Positions 2,178-58,140 of a stretch of DNA of 64,000 bases are shown piece after piece. Each line of letters starts with the position of its first letter. Within the stretch, counting starts at the first letter, position 1. Where the stretch lies: contig NIVC01000001.1 in the NCBI GenBank assembly GCA_002269645.1, positions 620,001 to 684,000 on the forward strand, written 5' to 3'. The translations under genes and the position numbers were made by a program. Source of the stretch: Macrostomum lignano. Lineage: Eukaryota. Under the pieces are notes generated by a model. It was given only the letters and a program-made list of their open reading frames with translations. It had not been told where the DNA came from and did not search any database.

Positions 2178-10595
<8,418 letters not shown>

Positions 10596-10839
10596 ATAGT
10601 GCTACACTGAAGTACATGTAACAGTGTCTGTCTACCGGTAGATTATTCAAGACTTCAATGAGGTTGTAATTTAAAGAAGCTTTACAGAAATTACTCAGTC
10701 ACTGGGCTGGAGAAACTCAAGTTAAAAAAATATTTACACATCAGTTAGATCACTCAAACCCCAATTAATTTCAAGCTCGTTGATGCATTACCAGTTAAAA
10801 ACGATAACCGGTGACAGGAATCTCTAAAATGTGGTTGAA

Positions 10840-11215
10840 AACAACTCACTAGTGACTCTGACGACTTTTTTTAACGAATCAAACGCGTCTAAACTCAAAC
10901 TGTTGCGTCACGTGAGTTGTAGAATCGTAAAAGTGTCGCAATCGATAGAGTCGTCTAAGAATAGTTGTATTGGCGCTTAACTGTCTACTAACTCAGTAGG
11001 CTAGTTAGAGCGCTTCAAACGCAACTTAGTGAGCTAGGGTCGTTATATCGTCACCCCGGAGTCACTAACAATCGCGCCAGAGTGGTTTTTAGAGTCGCAG
11101 GCAATAAAACGCCTCCAAATGGACTCTTAGGCGACTTGTACCGTGACATCTCGTAGTTTTAGAGTCACTTCTTTCATATTTTATCTGTAAAGCCTGCAAA
11201 GACTCTTCTTGGCGT
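10840..11215 (-). mobile_element. Dispersed ~400-bp non-coding repeat, copy 1 (inverted relative to copies 2 and 3)
   Basis: Reverse complement aligns by eye to 40360-40745 and 45655-45957 (e.g. gttttattg..tgcgactct..aaccactc; ctacttgagttagt..aaagt..agcgc). Confidence 0.7.
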
Positions 11216-12034
11216 CGGTACTCGATTGTATTCGATATCAAAGTTAAAAAATTCCATTTCGGCTGATTAAATTGTAATTTCTACTTTCAGTAATATGAAT
11301 CCCAGTTAAAAGTTAAATCCTGACTGTGATTATTTAAAGGTCTACATGTACTCTCTGAATCCAGACTATTTTTACAGTTTACATGCTTCTTTTTCTCTTT
11401 GATTTCCTGTGCGTTTTTTCACTGATTTTCTCTCCAATGGAAGTTTCCTTTGCTGCTTTGATTGCAATTTTCTTAAAACACAACTACCTGCACTGATGAC
11501 CTGATGTTGTCAACCTCTGCTTATTAAATCCTGTCAATTTAAATAATTATTACTGCTGGACAATAAGCCAATTTGAGAGAGTTTTTTATTACAGAAACAG
11601 ATTTTTATTATTATCATCAAAAATAGCCTGTTGATAGCAAACAAACAATAGCGGCTTTCTCTTGGGCAAGCAACAGACAGTTGAAAGGAAAAGCCGTGCA
11701 AATCGGAACATGCTACCATTAGTAAGTGATGGAAAACATGGGTACGCGTTGTTCTTTATTGAACTTTTTCAATATTCGGGATGCAGTTCCGACTATGAAG
11801 TGAGTGCGAGTTTCTGCGCAAATGAGACTGATCAGTTTACTCTGGAATTGCATTCACCGGCATTAAAATGCGACACAAAAAATGTCTACCAGGCACAGCA
11901 TGATTTAGTGACAGCAAGATTGAGAGCTTAGCCAGCTGGCAGGCGAAGCAGGAATGAAATATTCTGCGAAAAAGCCATAGCATGGCGGCACGATTGATGC
12001 GAACAAAAGGTGGCTTTTTAGGTAAGTAAGTTGT

Positions 12035-12913: not shown

Positions 12914-28251
<15,338 letters not shown>

Positions 28252-34391: not shown

Positions 34392-35769
34392 TTATTTATC
34401 GGATTTTGAGCAGACCGGGCAGACGCAGCGAATTCTGCGACTGGCCAACAGGCCGCCCGGCCCGGCGCCAACATGGTTGAGTTTGTCGCGCAGAGACTGC
34501 CTGGCAGATCTGGCCAGCTCTTGGCCGGCTTTGTAGTTGCCGCGGGCCTTCTCAACAACGTTGGGAAACATCTGACTGAGCACGTGCATGAAGCCGCGGT
34601 TCGTGTCTTCTACGCGCTTGGCGTAGCTGCTAATGAAGAAATTATTCGCCTTGCGCTGGAGCCAGTCCGACACGCGGACAGTGTGCCGGATGCGGACGGT
34701 TTTGAGCACCTGTTGCAGGTGGGGTGGGACAGACAAATAAAGCTTATTGACTGAATTTATTGAGAAACAGAGTTTGCGATAAGCAGAGTGTAAAGGGGGT
34801 GGGTCAGAGGATTGGGGGCTGGGTGATAAGCAGAGTGTACATAGGACTGGGACAGGGGATTGTGGGGTGGATGATAAGCAGAGTGTACATATGGCTGGGG
34901 CAGGGAATTGGGGGTGGATGATAAGCAGAGTGTACATATGGCTGGGCAGGCTGGGGCAGGGAATTGGGGGGTGGGTGGCAAGCAGAGTGCACATATAGCT
35001 GGGGCAGGGAATTGGGGGGAGGGTGGCAAGCAGGGTGTACATGGGGCTGGGGCAGGGAATTGGGGGGTGGGTGGCAAGCAGGGTGTACATGGGGCTGGGG
35101 CAGGGAATTGAGGGGGTGGCAAGCAGAGTGTACATATGGCTGGGGCAGCGAATTGGGGGGGTGGATGATAAGCAGAGTGTACATATGGCTGGGGCAGGGA
35201 ATTGGGGGGTGGGTGGCAAGCAGAGTGCACATAAAGCTGGGGTAGGGAATTGGGGGGTGGGTGACAAGCAGAGTGTACATGGGGCTGGGGCAGGGAATTG
35301 AGGGGGTGGCAAGCAGAGTATAAATGGGGCTGTGGGGCTGCGGCTGTACATGGGGCTGAGGCAGGGGATTGTGGGGTGGGTTGATGGACATAGAACTCAC
35401 CCGAGTCTCATCCCCACACGGAGTGTAGTGCACGGTCTCGGTGAAAACGCCCAGCCGAGTGAGCAGTCCGATATTCCTGGTGGTTGTGACAATAGACTTG
35501 GCAGCCGGATCGATAACCGAGTCTTCAACAATGTACTCGCACATGCTGGTCAAGGATTTCAAATACCAGGGCAGGGCGCCGGGGGATCTCTGTTTAACTA
35601 ACAGTCGGCGGGTGTGCAAACAGCCGTCCACAATGCGCCTGTCGACAACGTCCTCTGCGACAATGTGCTTAGCGTAGGGATTAGGATAGCGCCGCCAAAA
35701 CGCCAGACAGACCCGTTCCCAGCTGAATGGCAGGCGCTGCGTCACTGATAGATGGCCGCTGTCCGCCAT
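34392..35769 (-). CDS. PRELID1: PRELI/Ups1-family mitochondrial intermembrane-space lipid transfer protein (PRELID1-like); 2 exons, ~228 aa
   Basis: Exons 35769-35401 and 34709-34392, phase 0. SWERVCLAFWRRYPNPYAKHIVAEDVVDR, RRLLVK, YIVEDSVIDP, TTTTRNI, TNRGFMHVL. Confidence 0.82.
34765..35390. repeat. ~47-bp G-rich intronic minisatellite (gagtgtacatatggctggggcagggaattggggggtgggtggcaagca)
   Basis: About 12 variant units. Confidence 0.92.
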
Positions 35770-35864
35770 GCTTAGACAGGGCAGTCGCTTCTCACTGCAA
35801 TGCAATAATTAGGCTTTGTGACGGCAGTACAGTTTAACCCCAAATGCATTGTTTTGTACACTTA

Positions 35865-39613: not shown

Positions 39614-42600
39614 TCACAGCGATCCCCGAATCAGGTTGCCATCATCGAAGCTGAACTGCACCGCCTTCTTGCCGCCTTCAGCCACGGCAGCGACAGCCGC
39701 CGACGTGGCCGCGGTGGCCAGACGAACGCCGCCGACTCGGCGACGCCGCCTAACCGAGGAACCGGCACGGCGGGGCACGTCGACGCCCAACTGATCGTCG
39801 CCCGATTCGTCATCGGCGGCGCCGGCGTCCATGTCGTCGTCAACGCCGCCGAATAGCTCGGGATCGCTGAAGTGCTGCGGCTCATCCTGCAACGCACCGT
39901 CGCCACCGACACCGCTGCCGATGATGCCGCCGTCGACAGCGTCGTTCTGCTGGCTGCCGGCCGGTATTTTATCGCCATTTTTACCGACATTATCGTCGTA
40001 ATCTTCGTCGGAGTTGCTCGTCGAACTGCTGGAATCGTCATCAAGGCAACCGTCCGACCACACTACCGGGGCTTCTCCGTCCGAGTCGTTTAGCGCCAGC
40101 CGGGCACCTCGGCCGCCACTGCCGCCTCCGCCACCCCCAGCGGGGTTGTCAATGCGGCAGAGCATCTCGGCCAGGTCGGTGAAGCGCAGAGAAGGCGGCG
40201 CCTGCTCCTCCGGCGCGGTGGCGGCCACGGCTGCGGCGGCGGCCGCTGCGGCGGTGGCAGCAGCATTGGGATTGGTTGAGGATGCCAGGGGATCGGACTG
40301 TTGGCGGCTGATCTGCAATGGCCGAAGTCGGGATGTACGGTAATTAGGCTAAGAAGCGTCCCAGAGTCACTTGAGTCGTCCCAGAGAGGTTGCAGGTAAC
40401 ACAGGTAAAATAGGAAAGAATTGACTCGCCAAAAAGTCTTCAAAGAGTGGCCTAAGATTAAATTTCAAGGGTTTTATTGTGTGCGACTCTGAAACCACTC
40501 TGGGGACCGTAGACTCGTGTCTGGAGTCGCTGTAGAATCGCTGAGTTGCGTCACAAGCGCATCTGCGTCACTAAGAATCGTATTTTGCATTTTTAACAAC
40601 TCCATTGAGTCTACTTGAGTTAGTAGAAAGTAGAGCGCTAATGCAACGTATCTTGGACGACTTTTTAGCCACTCTTACGATTCTGCAGCTCACACGATGC
40701 CCTCGTGACTCAACAGTGGCCTCTCAGTTGCATTACAGTCGCCCATCCTCGAATATATTTGTTGACACCAATCATTAGCAATTTAAAGCTATCAACAAGC
40801 CTCACAAAAGGTTGAAAAGAACACATTACCAGTCAGAATCTCAAATGACTTTGAGCCTCGCGTCAAATTAGCCACAAACTTGGGGCCTGTTGCAATGTTT
40901 GCTCCCAAGGTACAGCTTGTGTTAAGCACAATATCATGAAAATTCACCTGTCGTTTAAACACCGGCAGCTTTTTAGATCGGCTCCACTTGCTAATGGCGT
41001 CCAATGCGTAGCGATAGCCGACCTGGTAGATTTCTTCAAACGAGCCGAATTGCAGAGTGGCGTATCGTTCAATTGGCGGCCGCAGGTATTCGCACAGGCC
41101 GTCAGATTTCACGCGCTCCAATTGGCGAACGCAGGACACGTACGCCAGACGGGACTGGATCTCGGTCAGGTTCGGCACGTTCACCTGATTGGGCGAAGTG
41201 ATGCATTACACAACCTGATTGCGAAACTTAGCTAAGACAATGGAACAACTGCTGTCCTAAATAAGCTCCAGTGTAACACAGGCAAGCTAACTGAGCTCCA
41301 GTGTGACATAGATAAGCTAATTGAGCTCCAGTGTGACATAAATAAGCTAATTGAGCTCCAGTGTGACATAGGTAAGCTAATTGAGCTCCAGTGTAACACA
41401 GGCAAGCTAACTGAGCTCCAGTGTCACATAGGTAAGCTAATTGAGCTCCAGAGTGACATAGATAAGCTAATTGAGCTCCAGTGTGACATAGATAAGCTAA
41501 TTGAGCTCCAGTGTGACATAAATAAGCTAAGTGAGCTCCAGTATGACATAGATAAGCTAATTGAGCTCCAGTGTGACACAGATAAGCTAATTGAGCTCCA
41601 GTGTGACATAGGTAAGCTAATTGAGCTCCAGTGTGACATAAATAAGCTAAGTGAGCTCCAGTATGACATAGATAAGCTAATTGAGCTCCAGTGTGACATA
41701 TGCTAATTGAGCTCCAGTGTGACATAGATAAGCTAATTGAGCTCCAGTGTGACATAGATAAGCTAATTGAGCTCCAGTGTGACATAGATAAGCTAATTGA
41801 GCTCCAGTGTGACATAAGCTAATTGAGCTCCAGTGTGACAGATAAGCTAATTGAGCTCCAGTGTGACATAAGCTAATTGAGCTCCAGTGTGACAGATAAG
41901 CTAATTGAGCTCCAGTGTCACACAGGTAAGCTGATTGAGCTCCAGTGTGACAGATAAGCTAATTGAGCTCCAGTGTCACACAGGTAAGCTGATTGAGCTC
42001 CAGTGTCATATAGATAAGCTAATTAAGCTCCAGTGTCCTATAGATAAGCTAATTGAGCTCCAGTGTCATATAGGTAAGCTAATTGAGCTCCAGTGTCATA
42101 TAGATAAGCTAATTGAGCTCCAGTGTCACACAGGTAAGCTAATTGAGCTGCAATGTCACACAGATAAGCCAATCAAGCGGGTGTCACGGGTGAGCTAATT
42201 AAACAACAGTCGCATATAGCCATGCATCAAACTAAATAGACGGAGAAGGTCGCACCTTGGCGGCAAACGGATTAATCCGTTTGTACAGCAGCCACCAGCC
42301 GGACAGCTCGTCTCCATAATTAGTCAAATTAGTCTCATCCTGCGACCCGACATCCACAGCGAAGATAGTAGACGGGGCAAACTTAGTTTTCATCACATCG
42401 GCCGGCAGGTTGTTGACGTAGCCGCCGTCTAGGAGCAAGTTCCCGCTGGCCGGGTCGCACAGGGGCGGCAGGTAGCCGCTCAGAGACATGCTGGCTCGAA
42501 CGTAGCGCCACAACGAGCCGCTGGTGTGAACTCGCATCTGCGATTTAGTAATATCAGTAGTGATGCAGAAATATGGCAGCCACAGGTCCTCGATGCAACG

Positions 42601-44158
42601 ATCGCCAAACACAGATTCGATGCCGCGGTTGAATGCCCGGCCAGTGAACATTGCAGTCTGAGGATAGGTGAGATCTACCAGCTTGTTCCACAGCGAGCTC
42701 ATCTCTTTAGAGAACTGCCGAGCCCTGGCTTCGAAGCCTTCTAGACGGGTCTCCTCAGCCCACAGGGCGCCCATGAACGAGCCGATGCTGGTGCCGCCAA
42801 CCATGTCGATGGGGATGCCGTGCTCAGTGAGTGCGCGCACAATGCCAACGTGAGCGATGCCTCTGGCGCCGCCGCCGCCCAGTACCAGGCCTACCGCTGT
42901 GTTGGTGACCACTCGGGCCAGACGGGAAATGTCCGACATCGGATCTGGCGGCTCGGCGAATACGCGTCTGCAGAGGCGAGATTGCTGCTCATTGTTGGGG
43001 CTGATCAGAATGAGCAAATGGCATTTTGGGGGCAGAGGCTGGGGTAGTTGATGTACATTTGGGGGCAGAGGCTGGGGTAGGGGTTAATGTACATTTGGGG
43101 CAGAGGCTGGGGTAGGGGTTAATGTACATTTGGGACAGAAGCTGGGGTAGGAGCTAATGTACATTTGGGACAGAGGCTGGGGTGGGGGTTAATGTACATT
43201 TGGGGCAGAGGCTGGGGTAGGGGTTAATTTACATTTGGGGGCAGAGGCTGGGGTGGGGGTAAATGTACATTTGGGGCAGAGGCTGGGGTAGGGGTTAATG
43301 TACATTTGGGGGCAGAGGCTGGGGTGGGGGTTAATGTACATTTGGGGCAGAGGCTAGGGTGGGGGTTAATGTACATTTGGGGCAGAGGCTGGGGTAGGGG
43401 TTAATGTACATTTGGGGCAGAGGCTGGGGTGGGGGTTAATGTACATTTGGGGGCAAAGGCTGGGAGTAGGGGTTAATGTACATTTGGGGGCAGAGGCTGG
43501 GGTAGGGGTTAATATACATTTGGGGGCAGAGGCTGGGGTAGTTAATGTACATTTGGGGCAGAGGCTAGGTAGGAGTAAGTGTACACGCGGAGTAGGAGTT
43601 CAAGCAAAGGAAAGGCGGTAGAGTCGCATCTTAGTCGCCCCCCCCCAGAAGGCAAACTCAGAGTAAACCGAGAACAGCAATGTAGACAAGGCGATCACCT
43701 GTAAACCTCGAGCAGCCGGCTGGAGCTGGCACCGGCTCCGGCGCCGCGCCTACGGCTAAACATTCGACGCGGGGCGCGCACATGCAGGTGTTGTTGAATC
43801 ACGAGACGATTGTCACCGAGGGGCTCGGAGGCGCGACTTAAAAACTCGCCAGTTTTTCCTGCAGTGGGCGCGTCTTTACGTCAATGTCTCAATAATCCGT
43901 TCATTAAAATGCACTACTGCCCGTCCCGTCTGTCTGTCTGTCTATCTATTTAGGTCAAAAAGTCCGCTGTGACTCCAGGAATGTGGTGTATGCCATTCTG
44001 TGCAAGACTTGCAATGACCGTTGTATCTACGCAGGTGAGACTTAATATAATTTAATTTAATTTAGTTTAATTTACCCACTTTCACAAAAATTTTTTCTTA
44101 GAATTTAATTGGAGAAATTGTGACTTTGTTTCAACTGTGTGCGTGGTTTCCTTTCGCC

Positions 44159-44253
<95 letters not shown>

Positions 44254-47200
44254 CAGTGTATCTATCCATCTGTCTATCTGTCTGTATGTCTGTCTATCTG
44301 TCTGCCCGCCAGTCTCACCAGGCGTGGGATAGAGCGTGCTCTCCTTATGCAGCAGAATGAGCATGTTGAGCACTCGGCAAGAATCGGGCAGCACTACCTG
44401 CCGCACGTGATCCATAGTTTCAACTCTATCGCTGGCCAGGGCCACAATCAGCACACAATCGGCCTGCCGAATGCACCGCTTAGTCCAGGCGGTCTTGTCC
44501 AGGTCGCACAGATACAGCAGCAACCGGTGGTCGTCCTCTTGCTGAGCCAGCCAGCTGGTGACCCGGTACTCCTGGTCGCGATCGAATGCTCTGCGACCGA
44601 ATCGTTTGAGCATGATGCGGGAGTTGAGGCGCAGACTGGCCCCGATGGTTGACATGGCGTGCTGCAGCTCCAGGGAGAATGCTTCTAGGGGCACCTGGGG
44701 AGAGTTTTGAATGATTGAATCAGTATCGAAATAACCTCACTCATTCAGCAGCCTCTCAACCAGCTTGGATTCCATAGCTACCTCACTCAATCAGCAGCCT
44801 CTCAACCAGCTTGGATTCCATAGCTGCCTCCCTCATTCAGCAGCCTCTCAACCAGCTTGGATTCCATAGCTACCTCACTCACTCAGCAGCCTCTCAAATA
44901 GCTTGGATTCCATAGCTACCTCACTCATTCAGCAGCCTCTCAACCAGCTTGGATTCCATAGCTACCTCACTCATTCAGCAGCCTCTCAACCAGCTTGGAT
45001 TCCATAGCTACCTCACTCATTCAGCAGCCTCTCAACCAGCTTGGATTCCATAGCTACCTCCCTCACTCAGCAGCCTCTCAAATAGCTTGGATTCCATAGC
45101 TACCTCACTCACTCAGCAGCCTCTCAAATAGCTTGAGTTATTTACCTTAGCGCTAGCTGGGAACAGGGCCACAGAACGCAGGTTGGACATTGGCAGACGG
45201 TACAGCTCGAACTCTCGCCCAGTCCTAGACTCGGGATTGTCAACAATATTGCCAAGAAGCCACTGCGACACCAGAGTGGTGAGTCGGGTCACTATATACG
45301 GATGACGCCGCTTGATGTTGTCCAGCAGGTCAACTGGGATGGCGGCCAGCTCGCTGTCGCGCACCGCCAGCACGGTGGTGGCTCTGGGCCTGGCGGTGAA
45401 CACTTCTAAGAAACCAACCAGATCGCCCCTGCCCAGCTCGGCTGTGAGCTCCTTGTGACCCTGGGGAGTTGTGTGTGCCTGGCGAAGGCGGCCGTGCAAC
45501 AGCAAGTAGACAGCGTTGGCGATGTCGCCCTGCAAGGCGGAGAATAGCCAGATAGCAGTTGTGTACTTTTAAATCGACTGGAGTTCAGCTTAGTGAATAC
45601 TATATTAGCTGAATACTAACCGCAACCAATTCTGCTTAACTTGGAAGTGCTAACCATAGTTACTCGTGTCTAGAGTCGCTGTAGAATCACTGAGTTGCGT
45701 CAAACTAAAGCACATCTGCTTCGCTTAATGAATAAGAATCGCATTTCACATTTATAGCAACTCTGTTTAGTCTACTTGAGTTAGTGGAAAGTTAAGCGCT
45801 AACACAATGACTCTTAAACGACTTTTTTTACGGTCCTAAAGCTCACGTGATGCCCTCGTGACTCAACAGTCGCCTCTCAGTCGCATTGCAGTCGTTTGAG
45901 TCAGTTAAAAAGTTACAAGAGTCGGCCCAGAGTTGCCTGAGTCACTAATGAGCTGTTTTCAACGGGATAATGCTACACTACTGTCAGTAGTTTTAGCCAG
46001 GGAAAATATTTCTGGTGGGGCTAGATCGCATATTTTGGGCTTCCTTATAATTATCGAGCAGTTGAAGCTCTGGATAAAGAAAAGTTGCCCGTCTTCGGAC
46101 TTTGTAAGCCGAACTAAGCCAGTTAGAAGAAGTAAGGTAAGACTGGTGATATTTTCTGTTTTACATCTTTCGAGTAAATATAAAATCTTTGGGTGTCCTG
46201 ACTCAATTCTTTGATCTCTAAGTACTAGGATTAGAGAAATCACGAGCCTGGTAGAAGCAATCTACCAAAACTCAAACCAGTTATAATCCATCAAGCATAA
46301 CAATAACAAGCAGTAGCCTAAGCCGCAAAGCAAACTTTTCCATAAATAATTCCAAGAGCCGAACCTGCTTATAGAGCGGCTTGCCAGACTCCAGACAGAG
46401 CCAGTCCAGCACAAAGTCCACCTGTCTGAGAAACGGCGACAGTCGTCTAACAATTAAACTGGCCAGCGGCAGCACCAGACTGGGCTGGGCCCGCATCAGG
46501 GCGTAGAAATCCCGGCTGCTGATGGCGGCCACGCAGGCGTCGGCTTCGCAGCGGACGGTGAAGAGCGACGCCTCGCCAGTGAGAATGGCGATCATGCCAC
46601 AGAGCTCGCCAGGGCCGGCCGAGTAGAGCAGACTGGAGCCCTGGTAGCCCTGGAGTGCGGGATGAGAAATCATATGGAAGGCTAGCAGGGGTCAGTGGCA
46701 ACGTGATCCAAGGGGTCAACAGGGTTCAATGATAGATGGAGTAACGGAATTCAATGGGAAACTCTGAGCAATTGGTTATGGGTAATGGTAATGGACTCAA
46801 CGGAACAAAAGGAGCTAAGGGGTTAACGGGGGTCGAAGACAAAAAAGGTCAAAGGGATAACGGGGGTTAAAGGGACAAAGGAGCTAAGGATTTAACGGGG
46901 GTCGAAGCCAAAAAAGGTCAAAGGGGTGACGGGGGTCAAAGGGACAAAAGGAGCCGAGGGGTTAACTGGGGTCAAAGACAAAGAAGGTCAAATGGGTAAC
47001 GGCCAACGGGGGTCAAGGGGAAAAAGGGTCAAAGGGGTAAGAGGTCAAGAGGACAAGAGGTCAAGGGGGTAGGGGTCAAAGACGTCCCGTTCATGGGCTC
47101 ATGGGTAACGTCAGTCAAGCGATGCTCAAGAAAGGATGACTCTCATAGGGAGAGCGAATGCTGAGGTCACTCATAATCACAAATGTAATTGAGACCCGTG

Positions 47201-49053
47201 TGCAGACAGTTCGCAGAGGAACAGCCCACCTGCTGCGTCACAGCCAGCTTGCCAGTGACAACATAGAACAGCGTAGGCAAATGCTCGCCCTGCTTGGCCA
47301 GCTTGGCGCCGGCGTGCACATTCGCCAGGCTGACCCGACCGTCCAGCAGGCTGGCATCGGACAGGCCAAACAGCTCGGCCAGGTCTGCCTGAGCAGCGGA
47401 CAGCAGCTGCTCCTGACGGGCCGCCTCCGAGTCTTCTGGGCCTGCGAAAATAAAAAAACAGTAGGGTAATTGACTGTCCATGGACACACCCGGTTCCGGC
47501 ACGGTCAATGAAAAGTCTCCAACATTCCAACAGCCCATCGACACGCTTTAAATTCCGACAGAGCGTCACCATACCCAGTTCCGACACTATCCACAAACTC
47601 GACATTCCAAAACTAGCTTTCGACAAACGACACTCTGACATTATCCGACACACTCAACATTTCGAAATTCCGACAAAATCTATCGACACATTCGACATTT
47701 TGACATGATCAATCGACACACAAAACAATCCGACACTCGACATTCCGAAACTATTCATCGACATACTCAAAATTTCGACATTTTAACATTATTGATCGAC
47801 AAACTTGACAGCGGCATTCCGACACTATCCATCGACACTCGACAATTCCGACATTATCCATCGACACTCGAAATTCCGATACTATTCATCGACACTCGAC
47901 ATTCCGACACTATCCATCGACACTCGACATTCCGACATTATCCATCGACACTCGACAATTACGACATTATCCATCAACACTCGACATTCCGACACTATCC
48001 ATCGACATTCGACATTCCGACACTATCCATCGACACTCGACATTCCGACACTATCCATCGACACTCGACATTCCGACATTATCCATCGACACTCGACATT
48101 CCGACATTATCCATCGACACTCGACACTCCGACACTATCCATCGACACTCAACATTCCGACTCTATCCATCGACACTCGACATTCCGACACTATATATGG
48201 ACACACTCGACATTCCTACACTATCCATCGACACACTGATTCTGATTCCCGCGCAACAAAAGTAGATGAGAGAAATCCTTACCATCCTGATCCTGTCGCG
48301 GTCTACGCTGCTTCCGAAGTCGTTGAAAAGTGACAGGCGTGCCATCACGTCCGGCTCGCTGCTGCTGCTGCTGCTGATGCCGCAGGCGGTGCTGGTGATG
48401 CCCGACTCCGCCGCCACCGCTGCCAACAATGCGCGGCACCTCGCCCATAGCCAGCAGTGACCGGTCGCCCGAGCTAGCTCCGGCGCCGCCCTTTCCGTTG
48501 CCGTCCAATTCGCTGTCGGAGTCCTCGCTATCCTCGCCAGTGAAGATGACACCCGGTCGGCCTTCGTTTCTATCCAAGTTTGTCGACGAAGCGCTGGCGG
48601 TCCGTCGGTGATGCTTCGACGTCCGGCGTCGGTCGTTGCGCCGCCTCCGCATGGCGGTCTCCTCGGCGGCGTCGAAGTCGGTGGGATCGCCTCGATCTGC
48701 CAGGCCCGAGTCGGAGCCGGCGGAATCCGCTGAGGCGGCGGTGGCGGCGGCAGACGGCGACTTCGACCGGGAGCGGCGGAACACCCGGATAGGAATGGCT
48801 GCCGACGGTGTGGGCGTCAGGACCGGCGGCGGCTTTGATGCCATCGGCACCGGCTGGGGCGCTGGAGTGCTGGAGCCGGGGGGGACGCCGGTTGCCGCTG
48901 CAGCCGAGGAGGCCAGGCTCAGCACCCGACAGCCGGATGGCGCTTGGGAGTCTGAGCTGACCAGCTCGCTAGTGAGTCCCAGGTAGCTGTTAAGCGCCTG
49001 TTTTGTGCAAGTTATACAGGTTGTAATAAATACGGATGGACGACAGACAGACC

Positions 49054-49089
<36 letters not shown>

Positions 49090-49100
49090 GGCAGACAGGC

Positions 49101-49133
<33 letters not shown>

Positions 49134-50066
49134 GGCAGACAGACAGGCAGACAGACAGACAGACAGGCAGACAGACAGACAAACGCAGGGCAAACTCACC
49201 TGATAGGTGACCCGCTGCAGCCGGATGACAATAAGCTGCACCAGCCGTACCATGGTGAGCCGGTGCTGCGGCTTGGCCAGCAACTCGGCCAGTCGGCCGG
49301 CGGGAATTCGCAGCACGCGGCACTCGGACGAAGCCACAACGGCGCGCAAAGATTTGAGCTTAGGCGAAGAACCAGTGAGAACTTCTAAGAAGCTGAGCAG
49401 AGAACAGATTGAGTGATGCTCGCCGAACTCGTGAAACTGCTGCTGCTGCTGCTGCTCCAGCAGGAGGAGTCGAACCCGGCCCCGCTGCACAATGTACAGA
49501 TCCCCGTCGGCGTCGCCCAGATCAAAGAGCGTCTCGCCGTGGCGCAGCTGCACAATCTCCAGGCATTTGCACATCTCCAATAGAAACGATTTCTCCAACC
49601 CGTCGAATATCCTGAGCGACCGCACGGCCAGGTAAAACTCGTTCAGCATGGGCGGCGGCCAGGCGAAGTCGTCGTCGGCATCCGTTGGCTCCAGGAAATA
49701 GTCCGGTATGCCGTCCATCAGCGGTTGCCGCTGCCTCAGCTGCTGCTGCTGGTACCGCTGGCCGGGCCTGAGCAGCTGCATCAGCTCGGCGCCCTGCGGC
49801 AGGCGCGGCATTTTGGGCAAATTCGGCGCCGCCTGCCGCATCATGCGGCGCAGCCAGTAGCTCAGACGGTCGCGCTTGCGAAACGCCGACCTGGACGGCT
49901 GCTGCGTCAGCGACGGATTGCGAAGCCTCGACCGGCCAGCCAGCTGCGGCCGGCCAGAAGCCGGTGCCCCCTGCTGCGCCAGCGGCCGACCGGTCGACGA
50001 GTAGCGCCGATAAAAGTACAGCAGCAGCAGGGCGCCGGACAGGGTCAGCAAAGCGGTGAGCACCAT
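39614..50066 (-). CDS. sws: Neuropathy target esterase / swiss cheese (PNPLA6/7-like patatin phospholipase with cNMP-binding domains); 10 exons, ~1548 aa
   Basis: Exons 50066-49200, 48997-48283, 47441-47230, 46649-46365, 45529-45146, 44694-44319, 43858-43699, 42967-42256, 41184-40948, 40312-39614; all phases consistent. N-terminal TM segment, three cNMP-like domains, [16 protein letters not shown] (catalytic Ser), [14 protein letters not shown] (catalytic Asp). Confidence 0.95.
40360..40745 (+). mobile_element. Dispersed ~400-bp non-coding repeat, copy 2
   Basis: Aligns to 45655-45957 and to the reverse complement of 10840-11215. Confidence 0.7.
41235..42165. repeat. 30-bp intronic minisatellite (agctaattgagctccagtgtgacatagata)
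   Basis: About 30 units. Confidence 0.95.
43020..43575. repeat. ~36-bp G-rich intronic minisatellite (aatgtacatttggggcagaggctggggtaggggtt)
   Basis: About 15 units. Confidence 0.93.
44160..44300. repeat. (CTAT)n grading into (CTGT)n
   Basis: Direct reading. Confidence 0.93.
44735..45135. repeat. 46-bp intronic minisatellite (cctcactcattcagcagcctctcaaccagcttggattccatagcta)
   Basis: About 9 units filling the intron. Confidence 0.94.
45655..45957 (+). mobile_element. Dispersed non-coding repeat, copy 3 (truncated at one end)
   Basis: actcgtgtctagagtcgctgtagaatc..ctacttgagttagt..gccctcgtgactcaacagt is shared with 40510-40740. Confidence 0.7.
47550..48235. repeat. 28-bp intronic minisatellite (cgacactcgacattccgacactatccat)
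   Basis: Degenerate at the left end, homogeneous at the right. Confidence 0.92.
49040..49182. repeat. (CAGA)n microsatellite
   Basis: Direct reading. Confidence 0.95.
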
Positions 50067-50196: not shown

Positions 50197-50525
50197 TATC
50201 TCAACCCGATAGAGTAAGCGGAACTGAAATCTCAACCCGATAGAGTAAGCGGAACTGAAATCTCAACCCGATAGAGTAAGCGGAACTTAAATCTCAACCC
50301 GATAGAACAGAATGGGATCTGTGAAATCTCAACCCGATAGAGTAAGCGGAACTGAAATCTCAACCCGATAGAGTAAGCGAAACTGAAATCTCTACCCGAT
50401 AGAGTAAGCGGAACTGAAATCTCAACCCGATAGAGTAAGCGAAACTGAAATCTCTACCCGATAGAGTAAGCGGAACTGAAATCTCAACCCGATAGAGTAA
50501 GCGGAACTGAAATCTCAACCCGATC
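50197..50525. repeat. 31-bp minisatellite (aatctcaacccgatagagtaagcggaactga)
   Basis: About 10 units, one of them chimeric. Confidence 0.93.
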
Positions 50526-51227: not shown

Positions 51228-51545
51228 TCTGTGGGTGGGGAACAGCAGATGAGTGGGGAACAGAATGGGATCTGTGAGTGGGGAACAGAATGGGATCTGT
51301 GAGTGGGGAACAGAATGGGATCTGTGAGTGGGGAACAGAATGGGATCTGTGAGTGGGGAACAGAATGGGATCTGTGAGTAGGGAACAGAATGGGATCTGT
51401 GAGTGGGGAACAGAATGGGATCTGTGAGTAGGGAACAGAATGGGATCTGTGAGTGGGGAACAGAATGGGATCTGTGAGTGGGGAACAGAATGGGATCTGT
51501 GAGTGGGAACAGAATGGGATCTGTGAGTGGGGAACAGAATGGGAT
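51228..51545. repeat. 25-bp minisatellite (gggaacagaatgggatctgtgagtg)
   Basis: About 12 units. Confidence 0.95.
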
Positions 51546-51630: not shown

Positions 51631-54600
51631 TTACTCCCCAGCAACCGAGGCGGCGGCAGGCCTCCGACCGTAGACCAGCACGCACGGTACAGCGAAGGCG
51701 GCCTCGTCAAAGACGCGACTGTCAGCCGACAGGCAGTCGACTCTGCCGTCTTCCAATCGGTGCCATCGACAGGCGCCGGCGTCGCCATGGCGACTGCGAA
51801 CGTAAACAACGTATTGCTGCTGAAAGCATCGATAGCGCCAGGCAACGGCCAGCAGATCGTAGCAGTCAGAAGCAGAAGCAGCAGAACCTTCTTCTCCGCT
51901 GATTAACGGCGAAAATCCTCGAATTGGGAAGTCCAAAACGGCTGCCCGATGGTGGCGGCAGTCGGCAAGGCGAATCAACAGGACTGGCGGCAGCGGAGGC
52001 CGCAACTGCTGGCGTCGGGTGGCCCGCTGGCCGAAAGCGCCGCAGGACGGGCACAACCAGGCCTGGCGCCGGTCCAAGCTGCTGCCCGGCCGCCACAGCT
52101 CGGACAGGCAGTCGGACAGGCGGACGCGGTTGCGGCTACGGCCGGGGCCGAACTGGCACCGGCTGGCATCCCAGTTGAAGTCTTGGGCCGACTGCAGTTC
52201 GCAGTGGGAATAGGGGCTGCGCTATTGGCTGAGCTGGGAACATAGACAGCCAGAATGATAATCCATGGACTATTAATAGTAGAGCTTGGACTGGAGTCCC
52301 AGATTCACAATCCATGTACTATCAATAGTAGAGCTTGGATTTGAGTCCCAGATTCACAATCCATGGACTATCAATAGTAGAGCTTGGATTGGAGTCCCAG
52401 ATTCACAATCCATGGACTATCAATAGTAAAGCTTGGATTGGAGTCCCAGATTCACAATCCATGGACTATCAATAGTAAAGCTTGGATTGGAGTCCCAGAT
52501 TCACAATCCATGGACTATCAATAGTAAAGCTTGGATTGGAGTCCCAGATTCACAATCCATGTACTTATCAATAGTAAAGCTTGGATTTGAGTCCCAGATT
52601 CACAATCCATGGACTTATCAATAGTAAAGCTTGGATTGGAGTCCCAGATTCACAATCCATGGACTATCAATAGTAAAGCTTGGATTGGAGTCCCAGATTC
52701 ACAATCCATGTACTATTAATAGTAGAGCTTGGATTTGAGTCCCAGATTCACAATCCATGGACTATCAGTAGTAGAGCTTGGATTGGAGTCCCAGATTCAC
52801 AATCCATGGACTATCAATAGTAAAGCTTGGATTGGAGTCCCAGATTCACAATCCATGGACTATCAATAGTAAAGCTTGGATTGGAGTCCCAGATTCACAA
52901 TCCATGGACTATCAATAGTAAAGCTTGGATTGGAGTCCCAGATTCACAATCCATGTACTTATCAATAGTAAAGCTTGGATTGGAGTCCCAGATTCACAAT
53001 CCATGGACTATTAATAGTAAAGCTTGGATTGGAGTCCCAGATTCACAATCCATGGACTATCAATAGTAAAGCTTGGATTTGAGTCCCAGATTCACAATCC
53101 ATGTACTTATCAATAGTAAAGCTTGGATTGGAGTCCCAGATTCACAATCCATGTACTTATCAATAGTAAAGCTTGGATTGGAGTCCCAGATTCACAATCC
53201 ATGTACTTATCGATAGTAGAGCTTGGATTGGAGTCCCAGATTCACAATCCATGGACTATCAATAGTAAAGCTTGGATTGGAGTCCCAGATTCACAATCCA
53301 TGTACTATTAATAGTAGAGCTTGGATTTGAGTCCCAGATTCACAATCCATGTACTTATCAATAGTAAAGCTTGGATTGGAGTCCCAGATTCACAATCCAT
53401 GTACTATCAATAGTAGAGCTTGGATTGGAGTCCCAGATTCACATTCCATGTACTATCAATAGTAGAGCTTGGACTGGAGTCCCCGACATCCCCGATACCT
53501 TAAATTCCTTTGTACCTTAAGTTAAATCAAGGTAAGGATCCAAAAATGACCCCCATGACAGATGAGTCAACACAAACTCACCCAGGACCGAACCCGAAAC
53601 CATTCAGGCCTGGGCGGCGGCGGCGGCGGCGGCACCAGCAGGTCTTCGGCATCTTCGGTGGCAGCCCTCGGCACCGCGGCGAAATACTCAATAGCAGCCG
53701 GGCCGCCGCTCGATTCCCCGCTGCAGTCGCTGAGATTCGAAAACGTGACAGCCCGACAGTCGGTCTGATAGAAATCGAACTGGCAGTGCTCAAACAGATT
53801 GGCTAGTTCAGTTTTCAAGCTATTTAACCTGCCATTTAGGCTGGACAAGCTCACAGCCAATGGGAAAGCTGGCAGGCTTCCTACAGCACTGTACGCTGCT
53901 GATGCCATGTACACAATAGCGAGAATGTGGTCGCGAGTTCGAACGCAAGACTGGACTGGTTGGACCAGCTCGTAACAGTATATAGAATCCTCCTGGTGCG
54001 GTAGGCCTAAAAAGTACAGGGATAGAGTTAAAACGTGATTTGATAATTATGATCCCAGCAACAAAATCGGGGATTCTGATCCCAGCAAAACTATTTGGGA
54101 TTCTGATCCCAGCAGCACTATTTGGGATTTTTATCCCAACAAAACTACTGGGGATTTTGATCCCGACAAAACTACTGGGGATTTTGATCCTGACAAAACT
54201 ACTGGGGATTTTGATCCCAACAAAACTATTGGGGATTTTGGTCCCAACAAAACTACTGGGGATTTTAATCCCAACAAAACTACTGGGGATTTTGGTCCCA
54301 ACAAAACTACTGGGGATTTCGATTCCAACAAAACTACTGGGGATTTTGGTCCCAACAAAACTACCGGGGTTTTAATCCCAACAAAAAATTAGGGATTTTG
54401 ATCCCAGCAACAATTTGAAAACAAAATAGTCTGCATTACCAGCATCTCACCATAGTCTGCGTACCAATCGTCGGCAGAGAACACCCTAGCCACTTTGCCG
54501 TCAGTCAGTTGAGCCAACAGCAGACAGTCGGAACGAATCTGGATAAGTATACAAAAATCTCAGTTCTATTGGCAGTCAATATATCAAATAAACTCATAAC

Positions 54601-57600
54601 GCAACAGCTACTGACCCCAAATTTCACCCCAATCAGGGCGCACAGATCGCCTGCTTGGCCAGCAGTCGGGGCGTCGATTCGACAGCGCGTCGGCTGATAG
54701 CGTCGCCCAGTTGCCAATGGCAACGCCGGCACCAGACAGAAATGGAACGGACGCAGATTGGCGGATGGCAACAGTGAGTCGGTCGGAGAGTTCAGGCTGA
54801 GCTGCACAAACGGCTGGCAAGCGTCGGACTGGTGGCCGCACTCACAGCATTCGGTGACGCACTGCAGCTGACCTGTGAACAGATCCGACACCAATGTGAC
54901 CGCCGCCGCTGCACCGTCTGCCTCTCTGGGCGGCTGTTTTTTGGAAGCCGAGTGCCCGGCGGCCAGCTCCACATGGAGGCCATTCAGCAGACAAGCCAGG
55001 TAATCCTTGTTTGGTAGTAATTACAGTTTGAAACTTTATAAACTCGAAAAGTCTTGTCTGCGACTGTCACAAGAGCAAAAGTTCACATTTTTTAAATATT
55101 TTACTTGTCCGTTATATACAGATCAAGATAGATATTGTGAAGAGTAGATCCGTGAAGGTTAGATCCTGTAAAGTTTCTATATTGTTAAGGTTAGATCCTG
55201 AGAAGATTAGATCTTGTGAAGGTTAGATCCTGAGAAGATTAGAGCTTGTGAAGGTTAGATCCTGTGAAGATTAGAGCTTGTGAAGGTTAGATCCTGTGAA
55301 GTAGGATGGATCCTGTGAAGCGTAGATCCTGTGAAGCATAGATATTGTGAAGGATAGATCACGTGAAGGATAGATCATGTGAAGAATAGATCTTGTGAAG
55401 GATAGATCCTGTGAAGGATAGATCCTGTGAAGGATAGATCTTGTGAAGGATAGATTCTGTGAAGGATAGATCCTGTGAAGGATAGATCCTGTGAAGGATA
55501 GATCCTGTGAAGGATAGATCTTGTGAAGGATAGATCTTGTGAAGGATAGATCCTGTGAAGGATAGATCCTGTGAAGGATAGATCCTGTGAAGGATAGATC
55601 CTGTGAAGGATAGATCCTGTGAAGGATAGATCCTGTGAAGGATAGATCTTGTGAAGGATAGATTCTGTGAAGGATAGATCCTGTGAAGGATAGATCCTGT
55701 GAAGGATAGATCCTGTGAAGGATAGATCACGTGAAGGATAGATCATGTGAAGAATAGATCTTGTGAAGGATAGATCCTGTGAAGGATAGATCTTGTGAAG
55801 GATAGATCCTGTGAAGATCTTATGAAATCCTTCATCTGATTAAAGACTTTGCTTTTCACGGATATACTCATAAAACTTGGCATTGCCACTTTTCGACACA
55901 ATATAAAGGATCCAATTAAAGAAATTGAAAGTAAGAATGATTGTTAACGAATATTCAAAAGTAAGAATCAATACATTTTTTTGCAAATAAGACAATCATG
56001 GTTCTCGTGGCAACCGAGCCCAACTCACAACGCATTCCAAAGACGCAGCGACAGAGTCAACTCTGCTCAGCTCTTCTTTCGGATCAGCGCAAGCCGACAT
56101 TGTAGCCCGCAATTGGCGCATTAAGATTCGCCCAACAGCTCTGGCCGACACAAACTCGTACAGGCCGGAGGTCATTGCGCGCAGCAGTTCGCAGATTGCG
56201 TCAGTCAGTGGACGACGACGACCAGCTCCGTTGCCTGCTGCGAAGGGTTTGAGATTGCCACTGCCGGAATAAGAGTTGCTAGACTTGGGCATACTGTATC
56301 AGCTTATATTCTCAGCAAGCAAACCTACCAGGCGGTAGGACGAGAAGCTGATCGACCAAGCGCGGCACGCCGCACAGCAGCTGTAGAGCGGCGTTCAAAG
56401 CGCCAGCATCGGCTCCAGGATTGGATAGGCCGCAACAGCAGCCTGCGGGGATGCGCAGTCAGTCAGTCAGTGAGTCAGTCAGTCAGTCAGTCAGTCAGTC
56501 AGTCAGTCAGTCAGTCAGTCAGTCAGTCAGTCAGTCAGTCAGTCAGTCAGTCAGTCAGTCAGTGAGTCAGTGAGTCAGTCAGTCAGTCAGTCAGTCAGTC
56601 AGTCAGTCAGTCAGTCAGTCAACCACTCAGTCAGTCAGTCAGTCAGTCAGTCAGTCAGTCAACCACTCAGTCAGTCAGTCAGTCAGTCAGTCAGTCAGTC
56701 AGTCAGTCAGTCAGTCAGTCAGTCAGTCAGTCAGTCAGTGAGTCAGTGAGTCAGTCAGTCAGTCAGTCAGTCAGTCAGTCAGTCAGTCAGTCAACCACTC
56801 AGTCAGTCAGTCAGTCAGTCAGTCAGTCAGTCAACCACTCAGTCAGTCAGTCAGTCAGTCAGTCAGTCAGTCAGTCAGTCAGTCAGTCAGTCAGTCAGTC
56901 AGTCAGTGAGTCAGTGAGTCAGTGAGTCAGTGAGTCAGTCAGTCAGTCAGTGAGTCAGTGAGTCAGTGAGTCAGTGAGTCAGTCAGTCAGTCAGTCAGTC
57001 AACCACTCACTCAAGTCAGTCAGTCAGTCAGTCAGTCAGTCAGTCAGTCAGTCAGTCAGTCAGTCAGTCAGTCAGTCAGTCAGTCAGTCAGTCAGTCAGT
57101 CAGTCAGTGAGTCAGTGAGTCAGTGAGTCAGTGAGTCAGTGAGTGAGTGGTGAGTGAGTGAGTGAGTGAGTGAGTGAGTGAGTAAGTGAGTGAGTCAGTC
57201 AGTCAGTCAGTCAACCACTCACTCAAGTCAGTCAGTCAGTCAGTCAGTCAGTCAGTCAGTCAACCACTCACTCAAGTCAGTCAGTCAGTCAGTCAGTCAG
57301 TCAGTCAGTCAGTCAGTCAGTCAGTCAGTCAGTCAGTCAGTTAGTAAACGCACAGCTAGTCTGGCTCATAGCAGGCAGCGGCGGTGGCTCCAGCAGGCCG
57401 GAGCGGGCGTCAACCACAGCGCCGGCTTCAATAGCGGCGGTGGCAGCGTCGGCGCGCGGCCAGTGGCCGCTGGCATCGGCGCCGCGGACAACGCGCAGTT
57501 CGATAAGTGCGCACTGGCCAGATCGAACTCTGCCGCGCAATGTCAAAGAGCTGTCAGTCAGCGGGAGGAAAAATCGATAAGGATACTCGCTTCACATTCT

Positions 57601-57975
57601 TTACTCGCTACTCAGTAGTAGGCGATCTCTTAATAAGCATCGTAATTAAACTTGAGAGCACAGAATTAATGCTACTCACTAGTCGGTCACGAGTTCGAAT
57701 CCGCCACTACCGCAGCAGTCGCCAGCAGGCGGAGACAGCCAGAGCCTGGCCGGGGTGTCCGCAGACCAGCTGGCAGCATTATTGGCAGCTTTGATCTCGG
57801 CTTGATTGCCGGTGAGCAGAGCTGTCTGAGCAGCGTTGAGCACAGCGGCAAAGGTGTCAGTGGGTTGGAAACGGTGCACCAAACGGAGATCTGGTCGAGC
57901 AAAGCTGGACAGAGTCAGGCTGAGACTGGGGTCTCGCGATTTTGACTGATCAGAGTCTGCCAAATTGCCGTCCAT
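51631..57975 (-). CDS. USP4/11/15-like ubiquitin-specific protease homolog, predicted catalytically inactive; 8 exons, ~769 aa
   Basis: Exons 57975-57680, 57550-57354, 56442-56329, 56237-56029, 55005-54616, 54538-54451, 54006-53582, 52221-51631 (2310 nt, phases consistent; the exon 4 acceptor is the least certain). UBL (HRF..ARLW..GQCALIE..HWPR), DYLACLLNGLHVEL, DLFTGQL..CCECG..PFVQLSL, LSDCL..WLCPSC, LPPVLLIRL, YDLLAV, VLVYGR. Confidence 0.82.
52255..53482. repeat. 49-50 bp intronic minisatellite (tagtaaagcttggattggagtcccagattcacaatccatggactatcaa)
   Basis: About 24 units. Confidence 0.96.
54040..54410. repeat. 27-bp intronic minisatellite (attttgatcccaacaaaactactgggg)
   Basis: About 13 units. 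Confidence 0.93.
55125..55818. repeat. 16-bp intronic minisatellite (gaaggatagatcctgt)
   Basis: About 40 units. Confidence 0.95.
56456..57340. repeat. (AGTC)n microsatellite ((CTGA)n on the sense strand)
   Basis: Fills almost the whole USP intron 2. Confidence 0.97.
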
Positions 57976-58140
57976 GCCAGGGCGCAGGGACTGAGTTGAC
58001 AAATAATCATATGACTGATGCAGACATAAAATTGAGTGAGAATAAATAAGTGATATACTCATCGAGATTGCTATGTTTGCAATTGTTTTATCATTTAAAC
58101 AATTAAAATTTAAATGTATACACATGCTGGCTGGCCTATA

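Follow-up and report, generated by a model that had tools for sequence, protein, structure and literature searches.

Retained dead enzymes are a recurrent source of regulators. The accepted pseudoenzymes among the ubiquitin-specific proteases (USPs), USP39/Sad1 and PAN2, are ancient and come from subfamilies other than that of USP4, USP11 and USP15; the papain-type mechanism of the USPs needs a thiolate and an imidazole. Pseudo-deubiquitinases constitute about 13% of the known deubiquitinases (DUBs) (PMC10919355), and none was found described within the DUSP-UBL clade (USP4/USP11/USP15; yeast Ubp12 type) in the pseudo-DUB literature searched. In USP15, the catalytic triad is formed by Cys269, His862 and Asp879, and blocking loop 2 (BL2) has the sequence GGMGG (PMC6231127). 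Here, the window under study, that is, the whole stretch of 64,000 nucleotides from the flatworm Macrostomum lignano (assembly GCA_002269645.1, contig NIVC01000001.1, positions 620,001 to 684,000 of the forward strand), was found to contain a gene, BOX15_Mlig027673g1, which appears to encode a very divergent relative of these enzymes that lacks both the nucleophilic Cys and the catalytic His, and which is under purifying selection. GenBank lists the gene only as a hypothetical protein. Pseudo-DUBs as a class are already known.

Catalytic Site

The protein was aligned by MAFFT with 10, and then with 41, canonical USP4/11/15 proteins. The motifs G-N-T-C and G-G-H-Y are present in 41 out of 41 canonical proteins, while both genomic copies of the M. 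lignano gene differ from them. The Cys box, CCCCGLSNPGADAGALNAALQLL (in the exon 56442–56329), was found exactly as quoted in the earlier note, which had claimed the loss of the nucleophile; in both copies it reads G-A-D-A-G178, with one extra residue and no Cys at the nucleophile column. The His box, YDLLAVAWRYRCFQQQYVVY...WHRLED, reads Q-Q-Q699-Y in both copies. Thus, the catalytic His is gone, as had also been claimed, but the residue at its column is Gln, not Tyr. An HMMER alignment to USP15, independent of MAFFT, resulted in the same G178 and Q699 columns.

The changes extend beyond these two residues. BL2, which is GGMGG in USP15, is represented by R-C-F-Q-Q (aligned as RCF-QQ), with the glycines replaced by bulky residues, and seven residues are inserted before LLNGLH relative to the canonical proteins. 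In the region expected to hold the third triad residue (Asp/Asn), the canonical F-D-D after the His box has become L-E720-D721, with a conservative Glu for the first Asp and an invariant second one. Retained are the Cys-box residues N172 and Q185, together with LL.GLH, the four zinc-ribbon cysteines C325, C328, C620 and C623, WxCPxC, LPPVL and YDL.AV. The LLNGLHVEL core and the zinc pairs (ECCEC and CPSC), reported previously as retained, are all present as quoted, and the Cys columns are invariant in the alignments. Because the thiolate and the imidazole of the established mechanism (USP15 triad, PMC6231127) are both lost, ordinary deubiquitinase activity would be very unlikely.

An alternative exon supplying the NTC and GHY motifs had been named in the earlier note as one of the observations that would overturn its reading. 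The Cys-box motif was absent from a six-frame regular-expression scan of 49–64 kb, and the same scan for the His box returned just two chance "GHY" strings with stop codons on both sides. When seven canonical proteins were used as tblastn queries on the window and on both loci, the matches were confined to exons 5 and 8, and no rescuing Cys-box or His-box exon was detected.

A run of four cysteines, C165–C168 (56442–56432, minus strand), stands directly before the degenerate Cys box, 10–13 residues upstream of the lost nucleophile. Of these, C168 alone has a conserved canonical counterpart, the Cys of LCGL, and that residue does not serve as the nucleophile.

Second Copy and Purifying Selection

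The genome of M. lignano is recently duplicated and highly redundant (PMC5730564). The 90% cluster of the protein adds two GenBank entries, PAA57052.1 (Mlig026978g1, 775 amino acids (aa), scaffold NIVC01002541.1) and the truncated PAA50909.1. At the second locus, on NIVC01002541.1 (97% identical), the same eight exons are present with every GT–AG site, the frame stays open with two 3-nt indels, and the dead motifs do not differ; the downstream neighbour gene is shared as well. No signs of a pseudogene (frameshift, premature stop or broken splice site) were found in either of the full-length copies.

Synonymous and nonsynonymous differences between the coding sequences of the two copies were counted by the Nei–Gojobori method and compared with the neutral expectation of 74.5% nonsynonymous changes by a binomial test. 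In total, 29 synonymous differences per 580 sites (rate dS, 0.052) and 27 nonsynonymous differences per 1694 sites (rate dN, 0.016) were observed, which corresponds to a dN/dS ratio (omega) of 0.31–0.32 (p = 2.3 × 10−5) over the time since the split of the two copies. Off-frame controls on the same alignment gave an omega of 1.0 and 0.79, and the three non-repetitive introns diverge by 3–8% between the copies, in line with dS. By region, omega amounts to 0.26 in the first half of the catalytic core (D1), 0.20 in the second half (D2) and 0.37 in the insert. When the same method was applied to the neighbouring gene, similar to neuropathy target esterase (NTE), true-frame exons gave 0.12–0.34, and most overlapping off-frame open reading frames (ORFs) 0.8 to 2.5, with two at 0.46–0.53. 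With an omega of 0.32 and off-frame controls near 1, moderate purifying selection acts on the protein, above all on its dead core, so that the gene is not a free-running pseudogene. The argument for purifying selection on the fold, made earlier from the open frame and the retained features, is in this way borne out.

The synonymous sites of the 5′ exons look unusually conserved. In exons 1–3 (57975–56329 versus 10049–11794 of the second locus), 4 out of 607 nt differ (99.1–99.5% identity), with one synonymous change against the expected ~6–7, and introns 1 and 3 among them are 94.6% and 96.7% identical.

Family Placement

The protein matches the Pfam family UCH (PF00443) over residues 168–740 (E-value, 9.7 × 10−9; 35.6 bits versus the cut-off of 23.9). 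A sequence search of the PDB returned only the catalytic domains of USP15, USP4 and USP11 below an E-value of 10−8 (1.6 × 10−11 to 2.5 × 10−9), the next family being Ubp8 (E-value, 0.0024). A phmmer search over 1.84 billion cluster representatives yielded 112 proteins at E-values of 10−3 or lower, including three M. lignano models of the same gene; the remaining matches have at most about 30% identity over the main matched stretches and E-values of at least 9 × 10−13. The 20 library matches that were looked up include USP4-like proteins of lungfish, sea urchin, bug and sponge, USP11 of catfish, USP15-like proteins of damselfly and brine shrimp, and Ubp12 of Mortierella; all of the named proteins among these best 20 matches outside M. 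lignano are animal USP4-like, USP11 or USP15-like, or of the Ubp12 type. None of the 20 is a flatworm protein, M. lignano included.

In the MAFFT alignments, identity to canonical USP4/11/15 members is 24–27% throughout, while a canonical crustacean member shares 44–54% identity with its top-ranked canonical relatives in other animals, vertebrates included. Given the ranking of the matches, with USP15, USP4 and USP11 first, and the low identity, the protein appears to derive from the DUSP-UBL clade and to have diverged very far from it, in agreement with its earlier designation as USP4/11/15-like. An orthologue at 30–90% identity was found neither in the 5.8-billion-cluster collection nor among the 50% representatives; this M. 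lignano-only distribution is a statement about the databases, in which the share of other Macrostomum species is not established.

In word-indexed homologue searches with the full protein and with a mixed alignment, the filter of 8000 candidates was filled by low-complexity words; besides copies from M. lignano itself, just two unrelated entries were returned. The best invertebrate match was considered as a flatworm protein and rejected, as it is crustacean-like (54% identical to a USP15-like protein of a barnacle); a search from it resulted in at least 120 canonical USP4/15 sequences, which served for alignments, with no M. lignano protein among those listed. Two older M. lignano models, P0002 and P0008 (70–84% identity), were rejected as paralogues, since an older assembly had represented this gene by frameshifted or fused models, and were excluded from the rate estimates.

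More generally, the older UniProt/MetaClust models P0002, P0007 and P0008 are either frameshifted or fused to the NTE-like neighbour and mimic diverged paralogues in searches. Some older models carry the misleading names "Cyclic nucleotide-binding domain-containing protein" and "DUF4906 domain-containing protein".

Accessory Domains and Fold

The earlier note held that the UBL domain is retained, which stands well for the UBL inserted in the catalytic domain and less so for the N-terminal one. A hidden Markov model (HMM) of the inserted UBL, built from the 41 canonical proteins, scored 23.5 bits on residues 345–480, with the best domain (E-value, 10−7) on residues 374–447; none of 500 shuffled sequences reached this score, the highest being 3.4 bits. 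In the full-length AlphaFold model, this domain has a predicted local distance difference test score (pLDDT) of 76–91. The inserted UBL is thus significantly retained.

For the N-terminal UBL, the HMM score was 3.8 bits versus 1.5 for the highest shuffle, the aligned part being the last strand and the G-x-W-P-R motif (GQ..IE..GHWPR). No Pfam match was obtained with the isolated N-terminus (Ubiquitin_3/PF14836 included) or with the insert, and BLASTP of the N-terminus against the urchin USP4-like protein gave collinear fragments only (E-values of at least 0.1). An AlphaFold2 model of residues 13–138 reached a pLDDT of 72 and a predicted template modelling score (pTM) of 0.70, steered by an alignment of canonical UBLs. 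Foldseek matched this model to the UBL halves of USP4, USP15 and USP11 DUSP-UBL crystals, with template modelling (TM) scores of 0.62–0.67 and root-mean-square deviations of 2.2–3.0 Å, whereas other ubiquitin-like folds had TM scores of at most 0.53. Because the model is steered by the alignment of canonical UBLs, the N-terminal UBL is rated as probable and not more.

The previously reported absence of a DUSP domain upstream was supported by all of the searches: DUSP (PF06337) had no match in Pfam or with an HMM of canonical DUSP domains, and tblastn with DUSP/N-terminal sequences gave nothing better than an E-value of 4.9 in the window or in the 10 kb upstream at either locus. There were no gene calls in the 10 kb upstream at either locus.

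Gene Structure and Transcript Support

Enumeration of frame-preserving GT/AG pairs allowed an eight-exon gene to be rebuilt on the minus strand (57975–51631) from ATG to TAA, in which every intron is bounded by GT..AG and the frame is open (Table 1). Competing exon 3/exon 4 and exon 7/exon 8 junctions were enumerated as well, and the transcript-derived protein decided between them. The protein is 759 aa long with the exon-8 acceptor 52191, and 769 aa with the in-frame acceptor 52221. The GenBank protein PAA94770.1 ("hypothetical protein BOX15_Mlig027673g1, partial", M. lignano, scaffold NIVC01000001.1) is 99–100% identical, and uses the 52191 acceptor and the same other seven junctions. According to the literature, the GenBank annotation of the M. 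lignano assembly was built solely from transcripts, namely from RNA-seq data (StringTie/TACO) and a de novo transcriptome, with TransDecoder (PMC5730564). Because this annotation was produced only from assembled transcripts, the PAA94770.1 model is evidence of a spliced mRNA, and 52191 is, in preference to 52221, the most likely start of exon 8, hence 759 aa. The eight in-frame exons described earlier are thus upheld by their GT–AG borders and the transcript-derived model, and, as regards the transcript check that had been proposed, the splice structure matches the annotation; the length of ~769 aa most likely does not hold.

The coding sequence of PAA94770.1 begins 14 codons 5′ of the ATG, where the frame is open, which explains the label "partial". 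Just before these 14 open codons, a pyrimidine-rich AG at ~58018 may be a spliced-leader acceptor. The G + C content is 53–68% in exons and 34–50% in introns.

Table 1. Positions of the predicted gene, its exons and the encoded motifs and domains in the window.
Feature	Position	Strand	Remarks
Coding region of the dead USP4/11/15-like gene	51631..57975	-	BOX15_Mlig027673g1 (PAA94770.1); eight exons, 759 aa
Exon 1	57680..57975	-	ATG at 57975, good Kozak context gcATGg; codes for the start of the N-terminal UBL-like domain
Exon 2	57354..57550	-	End of the N-terminal UBL-like domain (SGQCALIEL...GHWPR) and linker; HMM aligns GQ..IE..G.WPR
Exon 3	56329..56442	-	Carries the degenerate Cys box
Exon 4	56029..56237	-	Thumb helices; acceptor 56237 agrees with PAA94770.1
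Exon 5	54616..55005	-	LLNGLHVEL, first zinc-ribbon pair, start of the inserted UBL; tblastn matches
Exon 6	54451..54538	-	
Exon 7	53582..54006	-	Remainder of the insert; low-complexity, proline-rich
Exon 8	51631..52191	-	Second zinc pair, palm, degenerate His box, stop codon; acceptor 52221 in frame, +10 aa; tblastn matches
Cys box G169–L187 (GLSNPGADAGALNAALQLL)	56375..56431	-	Catalytic-Cys codon GGC (G178) at 56404–56402; conserved N172 kept
His box Y684–D721	51748..51861	-	Catalytic-His codon CAA (Q699) at 51816–51814; acidic pair DD replaced by E720-D721
First zinc-ribbon pair C325-x-x-C328 (ECCEC)	54838..54849	-	Columns invariant in alignments
Second zinc-ribbon pair C620-P-S-C623	52042..52053	-	Columns invariant in alignments
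UBL inserted in the catalytic domain, residues 374–447	53960..54702	-	Exons 5–7, across introns 5 and 6
Probable N-terminal UBL-like domain, residues ~18–131	57454..57924	-	Split by intron 1

An upstream ATG at 58010 opens an out-of-frame upstream ORF (uORF) of 31 codons (57915–58010, minus strand), which overlaps the main ATG at 57975. The uORF is kept in the second copy; the Kozak context is stronger at the main ATG.

Each long intron is filled by a tandem array, all of them different: (CAGT)n in ~222 copies at 56456–57345, a 16-bp unit × 43 at 55127–55816, a 27-bp unit × 13.6 at 54046–54410, and a 49-bp unit × 24.8 at 52260–53483. The 3′ flank of the gene contains a 25-bp array (51250–51545) and a 31-bp array (50198–50524). 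Array lengths vary strongly between the two genomic copies (intron 6, 444 versus 1197 bp; intron 7, 1390 versus 566 bp).

Neighbouring Sequence

The downstream neighbour (~41600–50066, minus strand) is a neuropathy-target-esterase/PNPLA6-like gene of ~1400–1550 aa with cNMP_binding, NTE_Ploop and Patatin domains, syntenic at both loci. An uninterrupted ORF of 1379 aa at 14150–18289 (plus strand) carries endonuclease, reverse-transcriptase and RNase H domains, and is apparently an intact non-long-terminal-repeat retrotransposon of the long interspersed nuclear element type. Two further ORFs on the minus strand, one with a PRELI-like domain (34804–35805; E-value, 1.4 × 10−23) and one with an SH2 domain fragment (22440–23402; E-value, 1.8 × 10−8), are probably exons of two further host genes.

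Favoured and Alternative Explanations

This is a real, transcribed gene that codes for a protein, and it would be explained by descent from a USP of the DUSP-UBL clade through very fast evolution, with ~25% identity to canonical members that are themselves ~45% identical across animals. Along this path, the protein lost the DUSP domain, the nucleophilic Cys (replaced by Gly178, with one extra loop residue), the general-base His (replaced by Gln699) and the glycine-rich BL2. The landmarks of the USP fold remain, as do the inserted UBL, all four cysteines of the zinc ribbon in the fingers and probably the N-terminal UBL. Thiol-protease action would be gone, yet at least two genomic copies are held by purifying selection. 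The gene structure, the homology, the lost residues, the transcript-derived model and the selection are shown by the data above. We infer that the protein performs non-catalytic work, comparable to that of USP39/Sad1 in splicing complexes or to that of PAN2's USP domain, and, on balance, a functional, non-catalytic protein with a USP fold is the explanation that we favour as probable. As the fold is under selection and the zinc ribbon and the UBL domains are kept, these features point to a binding function. Most plausibly, the fingers/palm/thumb surface together with the UBL domains would form a binding site, whether for ubiquitin, for a ubiquitin-like domain or for some partner protein, and the product could serve as a scaffold, or as a decoy which shields or competes for substrates of active USPs. 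Because BL2 is replaced, part of the thumb is deleted and the channel for the ubiquitin tail may be lost, a scaffold or decoy for a partner would be at least as likely as a ubiquitin reader. SART3-type recruitment is known for USP4/15 (PMC4914101), and the loss of DUSP suggests that it is probably not used here.

A more far-reaching version, which we put forward only tentatively and hold to be doubtful as a whole, is that the gene represents the first pseudoenzyme in the DUSP-UBL clade: a young, fast-evolved and flatworm-specific paralogue without DUSP and catalysis, but with zinc fingers and both UBLs kept, acting as a ubiquitin/UBL reader or decoy that modulates active USP4/15 pathways such as spliceosome recycling and signalling.

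Several points weigh against a functional, non-catalytic USP-fold protein. Pseudo-DUB calls based on sequence have been overturned before, as for USP53 and USP54 (PMC12037411), and activity has been claimed for USP39 and USP52 (PMC10919355). The three gene identifiers were not found in the text of the M. lignano literature or in its searchable supplementary tables. An omega of 0.32 is moderate constraint only, derived from 56 substitutions between two recent copies. For the ubiquitin-reader version in particular, 14 thumb residues conserved in canonical proteins (VVAKEAWENHLKRN) are deleted, besides the replacement of BL2. AlphaFold modelled the full-length protein poorly (mean pLDDT, 57.5; pTM, 0.44; core mostly 45–70), and the model is driven by the alignment of canonical USPs, so that it provides no independent proof of an intact fold; its Foldseek matches to USP11, USP15 and USP4 (TM score of 0.42–0.57 to the target) are consistent but circular, and carry little weight.

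The same gene could also be a duplicate which, although transcribed, has no function and is turning into a pseudogene, and in which the catalytic residues were lost without selection and the open frame is a leftover. The extreme divergence (~25% identity to all relatives), the low-complexity segments rich in Ala, Arg and Pro, the lack of an orthologue outside M. lignano in the databases searched, and the redundancy of a recently duplicated genome, which relaxes selection on copies (PMC5730564), all agree with such decay. It is, however, difficult to reconcile with exons that carry zero stops or frameshifts at ~5% neutral intron divergence, and with two copies that both keep the 759-codon frame and all 14 splice sites and differ by in-frame 3-nt indels only. 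Furthermore, nonsynonymous changes are depleted three-fold (omega 0.32, p = 2 × 10−5; ~1 in the other frames), and the halves of the dead core are the most constrained regions (0.20–0.26). Decay without function is thus regarded as unlikely.

That the protein might still cleave ubiquitin, or act as a protease on a different ubiquitin-like modifier, seems highly improbable. Non-canonical residues would have to take over, for which a cysteine of the CCCC run (C165–C168) or C695, at the place once occupied by BL2, could be proposed, the more so as N172, Gln185 and the acidic pair E720-D721 are kept; but C168, the only member of the run that aligns with a conserved canonical Cys, does not correspond to the nucleophile, and R-C-F-Q-Q stands in place of the glycine-rich BL2, the gate for the ubiquitin tail. 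USP39 and USP52 have been claimed to be active although they lack triad residues (PMC10919355), and USP53 and USP54, which the earlier note still counted among the pseudo-USPs, were wrongly annotated as inactive and have since been shown to be active; these two, however, have the canonical triad (PMC12037411), whereas here both Cys and His are absent from both copies. Orthogonal to the other alternatives, the gene might be the sole USP4/11/15-type gene of M. lignano and not an extra paralogue, with enzymatic activity lost in the whole lineage. The 20 named library matches contain no canonical M. lignano USP4/15, and the word-indexed searches gave only this gene for M. lignano; these searches were not designed for a canonical gene, and the matches listed were ranked by how closely they resemble the crustacean query or the dead protein. 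Conservation of the DUSP-UBL USPs extends from fungi to animals, mice need at least one of USP4 and USP15 to be viable (PMC6231127), and extreme acceleration of the evolutionary rate is typical of a redundant duplicate. A sole, dead gene is therefore considered quite unlikely.

Comparison with Known Systems

If a functional, non-catalytic protein is the correct reading, this recent dead derivative of USP4/11/15 would show which parts of these enzymes carry non-catalytic function, namely the zinc fingers and the two UBLs (inserted and N-terminal), whereas DUSP would be dispensable, and would represent a natural experiment in the conversion of a deubiquitinase into a non-catalytic regulator in a highly regenerative animal. 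RNA interference and transgenesis work in M. lignano, which makes the proposal testable in this species; its scope is narrow, covering one gene family in one flatworm genome.

The closest counterparts are USP15, USP4 and USP11 (fungal Ubp12), which ranked first by sequence both in the PDB and in the library of 1.84 billion proteins. They share with the M. lignano protein the order of parts, with a UBL (only probable in the M. lignano protein) followed by a USP domain split by an inserted UBL and a disordered insert, as well as the four zinc-ribbon cysteines, GL.N, Q185, LL.GLH, WxCPxC and YDL.AV. In contrast to them, the M. lignano protein has no DUSP, has Gly (plus one residue) for Cys, Gln for His and RCF-QQ for the GGMGG of BL2, carries a 14-residue thumb deletion and a 7-residue insertion before LLNGLH, is only ~25% identical, and occurs in databases in M. 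lignano only. USP53 and USP54 resemble it in having long been annotated as inactive USPs, but they possess the canonical Cys/His triad and are active K63-specific DUBs (PMC12037411), whereas the M. lignano protein has neither of the two residues.

PAN2/USP52 likewise has a USP-like domain without a canonical triad, which serves as a structural module (PMC10919355), and yeast Pan2 is a weak fold match (6r9p_A) to the full-length model; PAN2, however, combines this domain with a DEDD exonuclease and a WD40 domain in one fusion protein, while the M. lignano protein has no comparable fusion. USP39/yeast Sad1, with USP39 only a weak structural match (8y6o_U) to the same model, belongs to another subfamily, has a ZnF-UBP N-terminus and no UBLs, and is ancient and universally conserved, whereas the M. 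lignano gene is young and lineage-specific. Nevertheless, both have a USP fold that is selectively maintained without the conserved catalytic Cys and His, and USP39/Sad1 may thus serve as a model for a scaffold role (PMC10919355) of the M. lignano protein.

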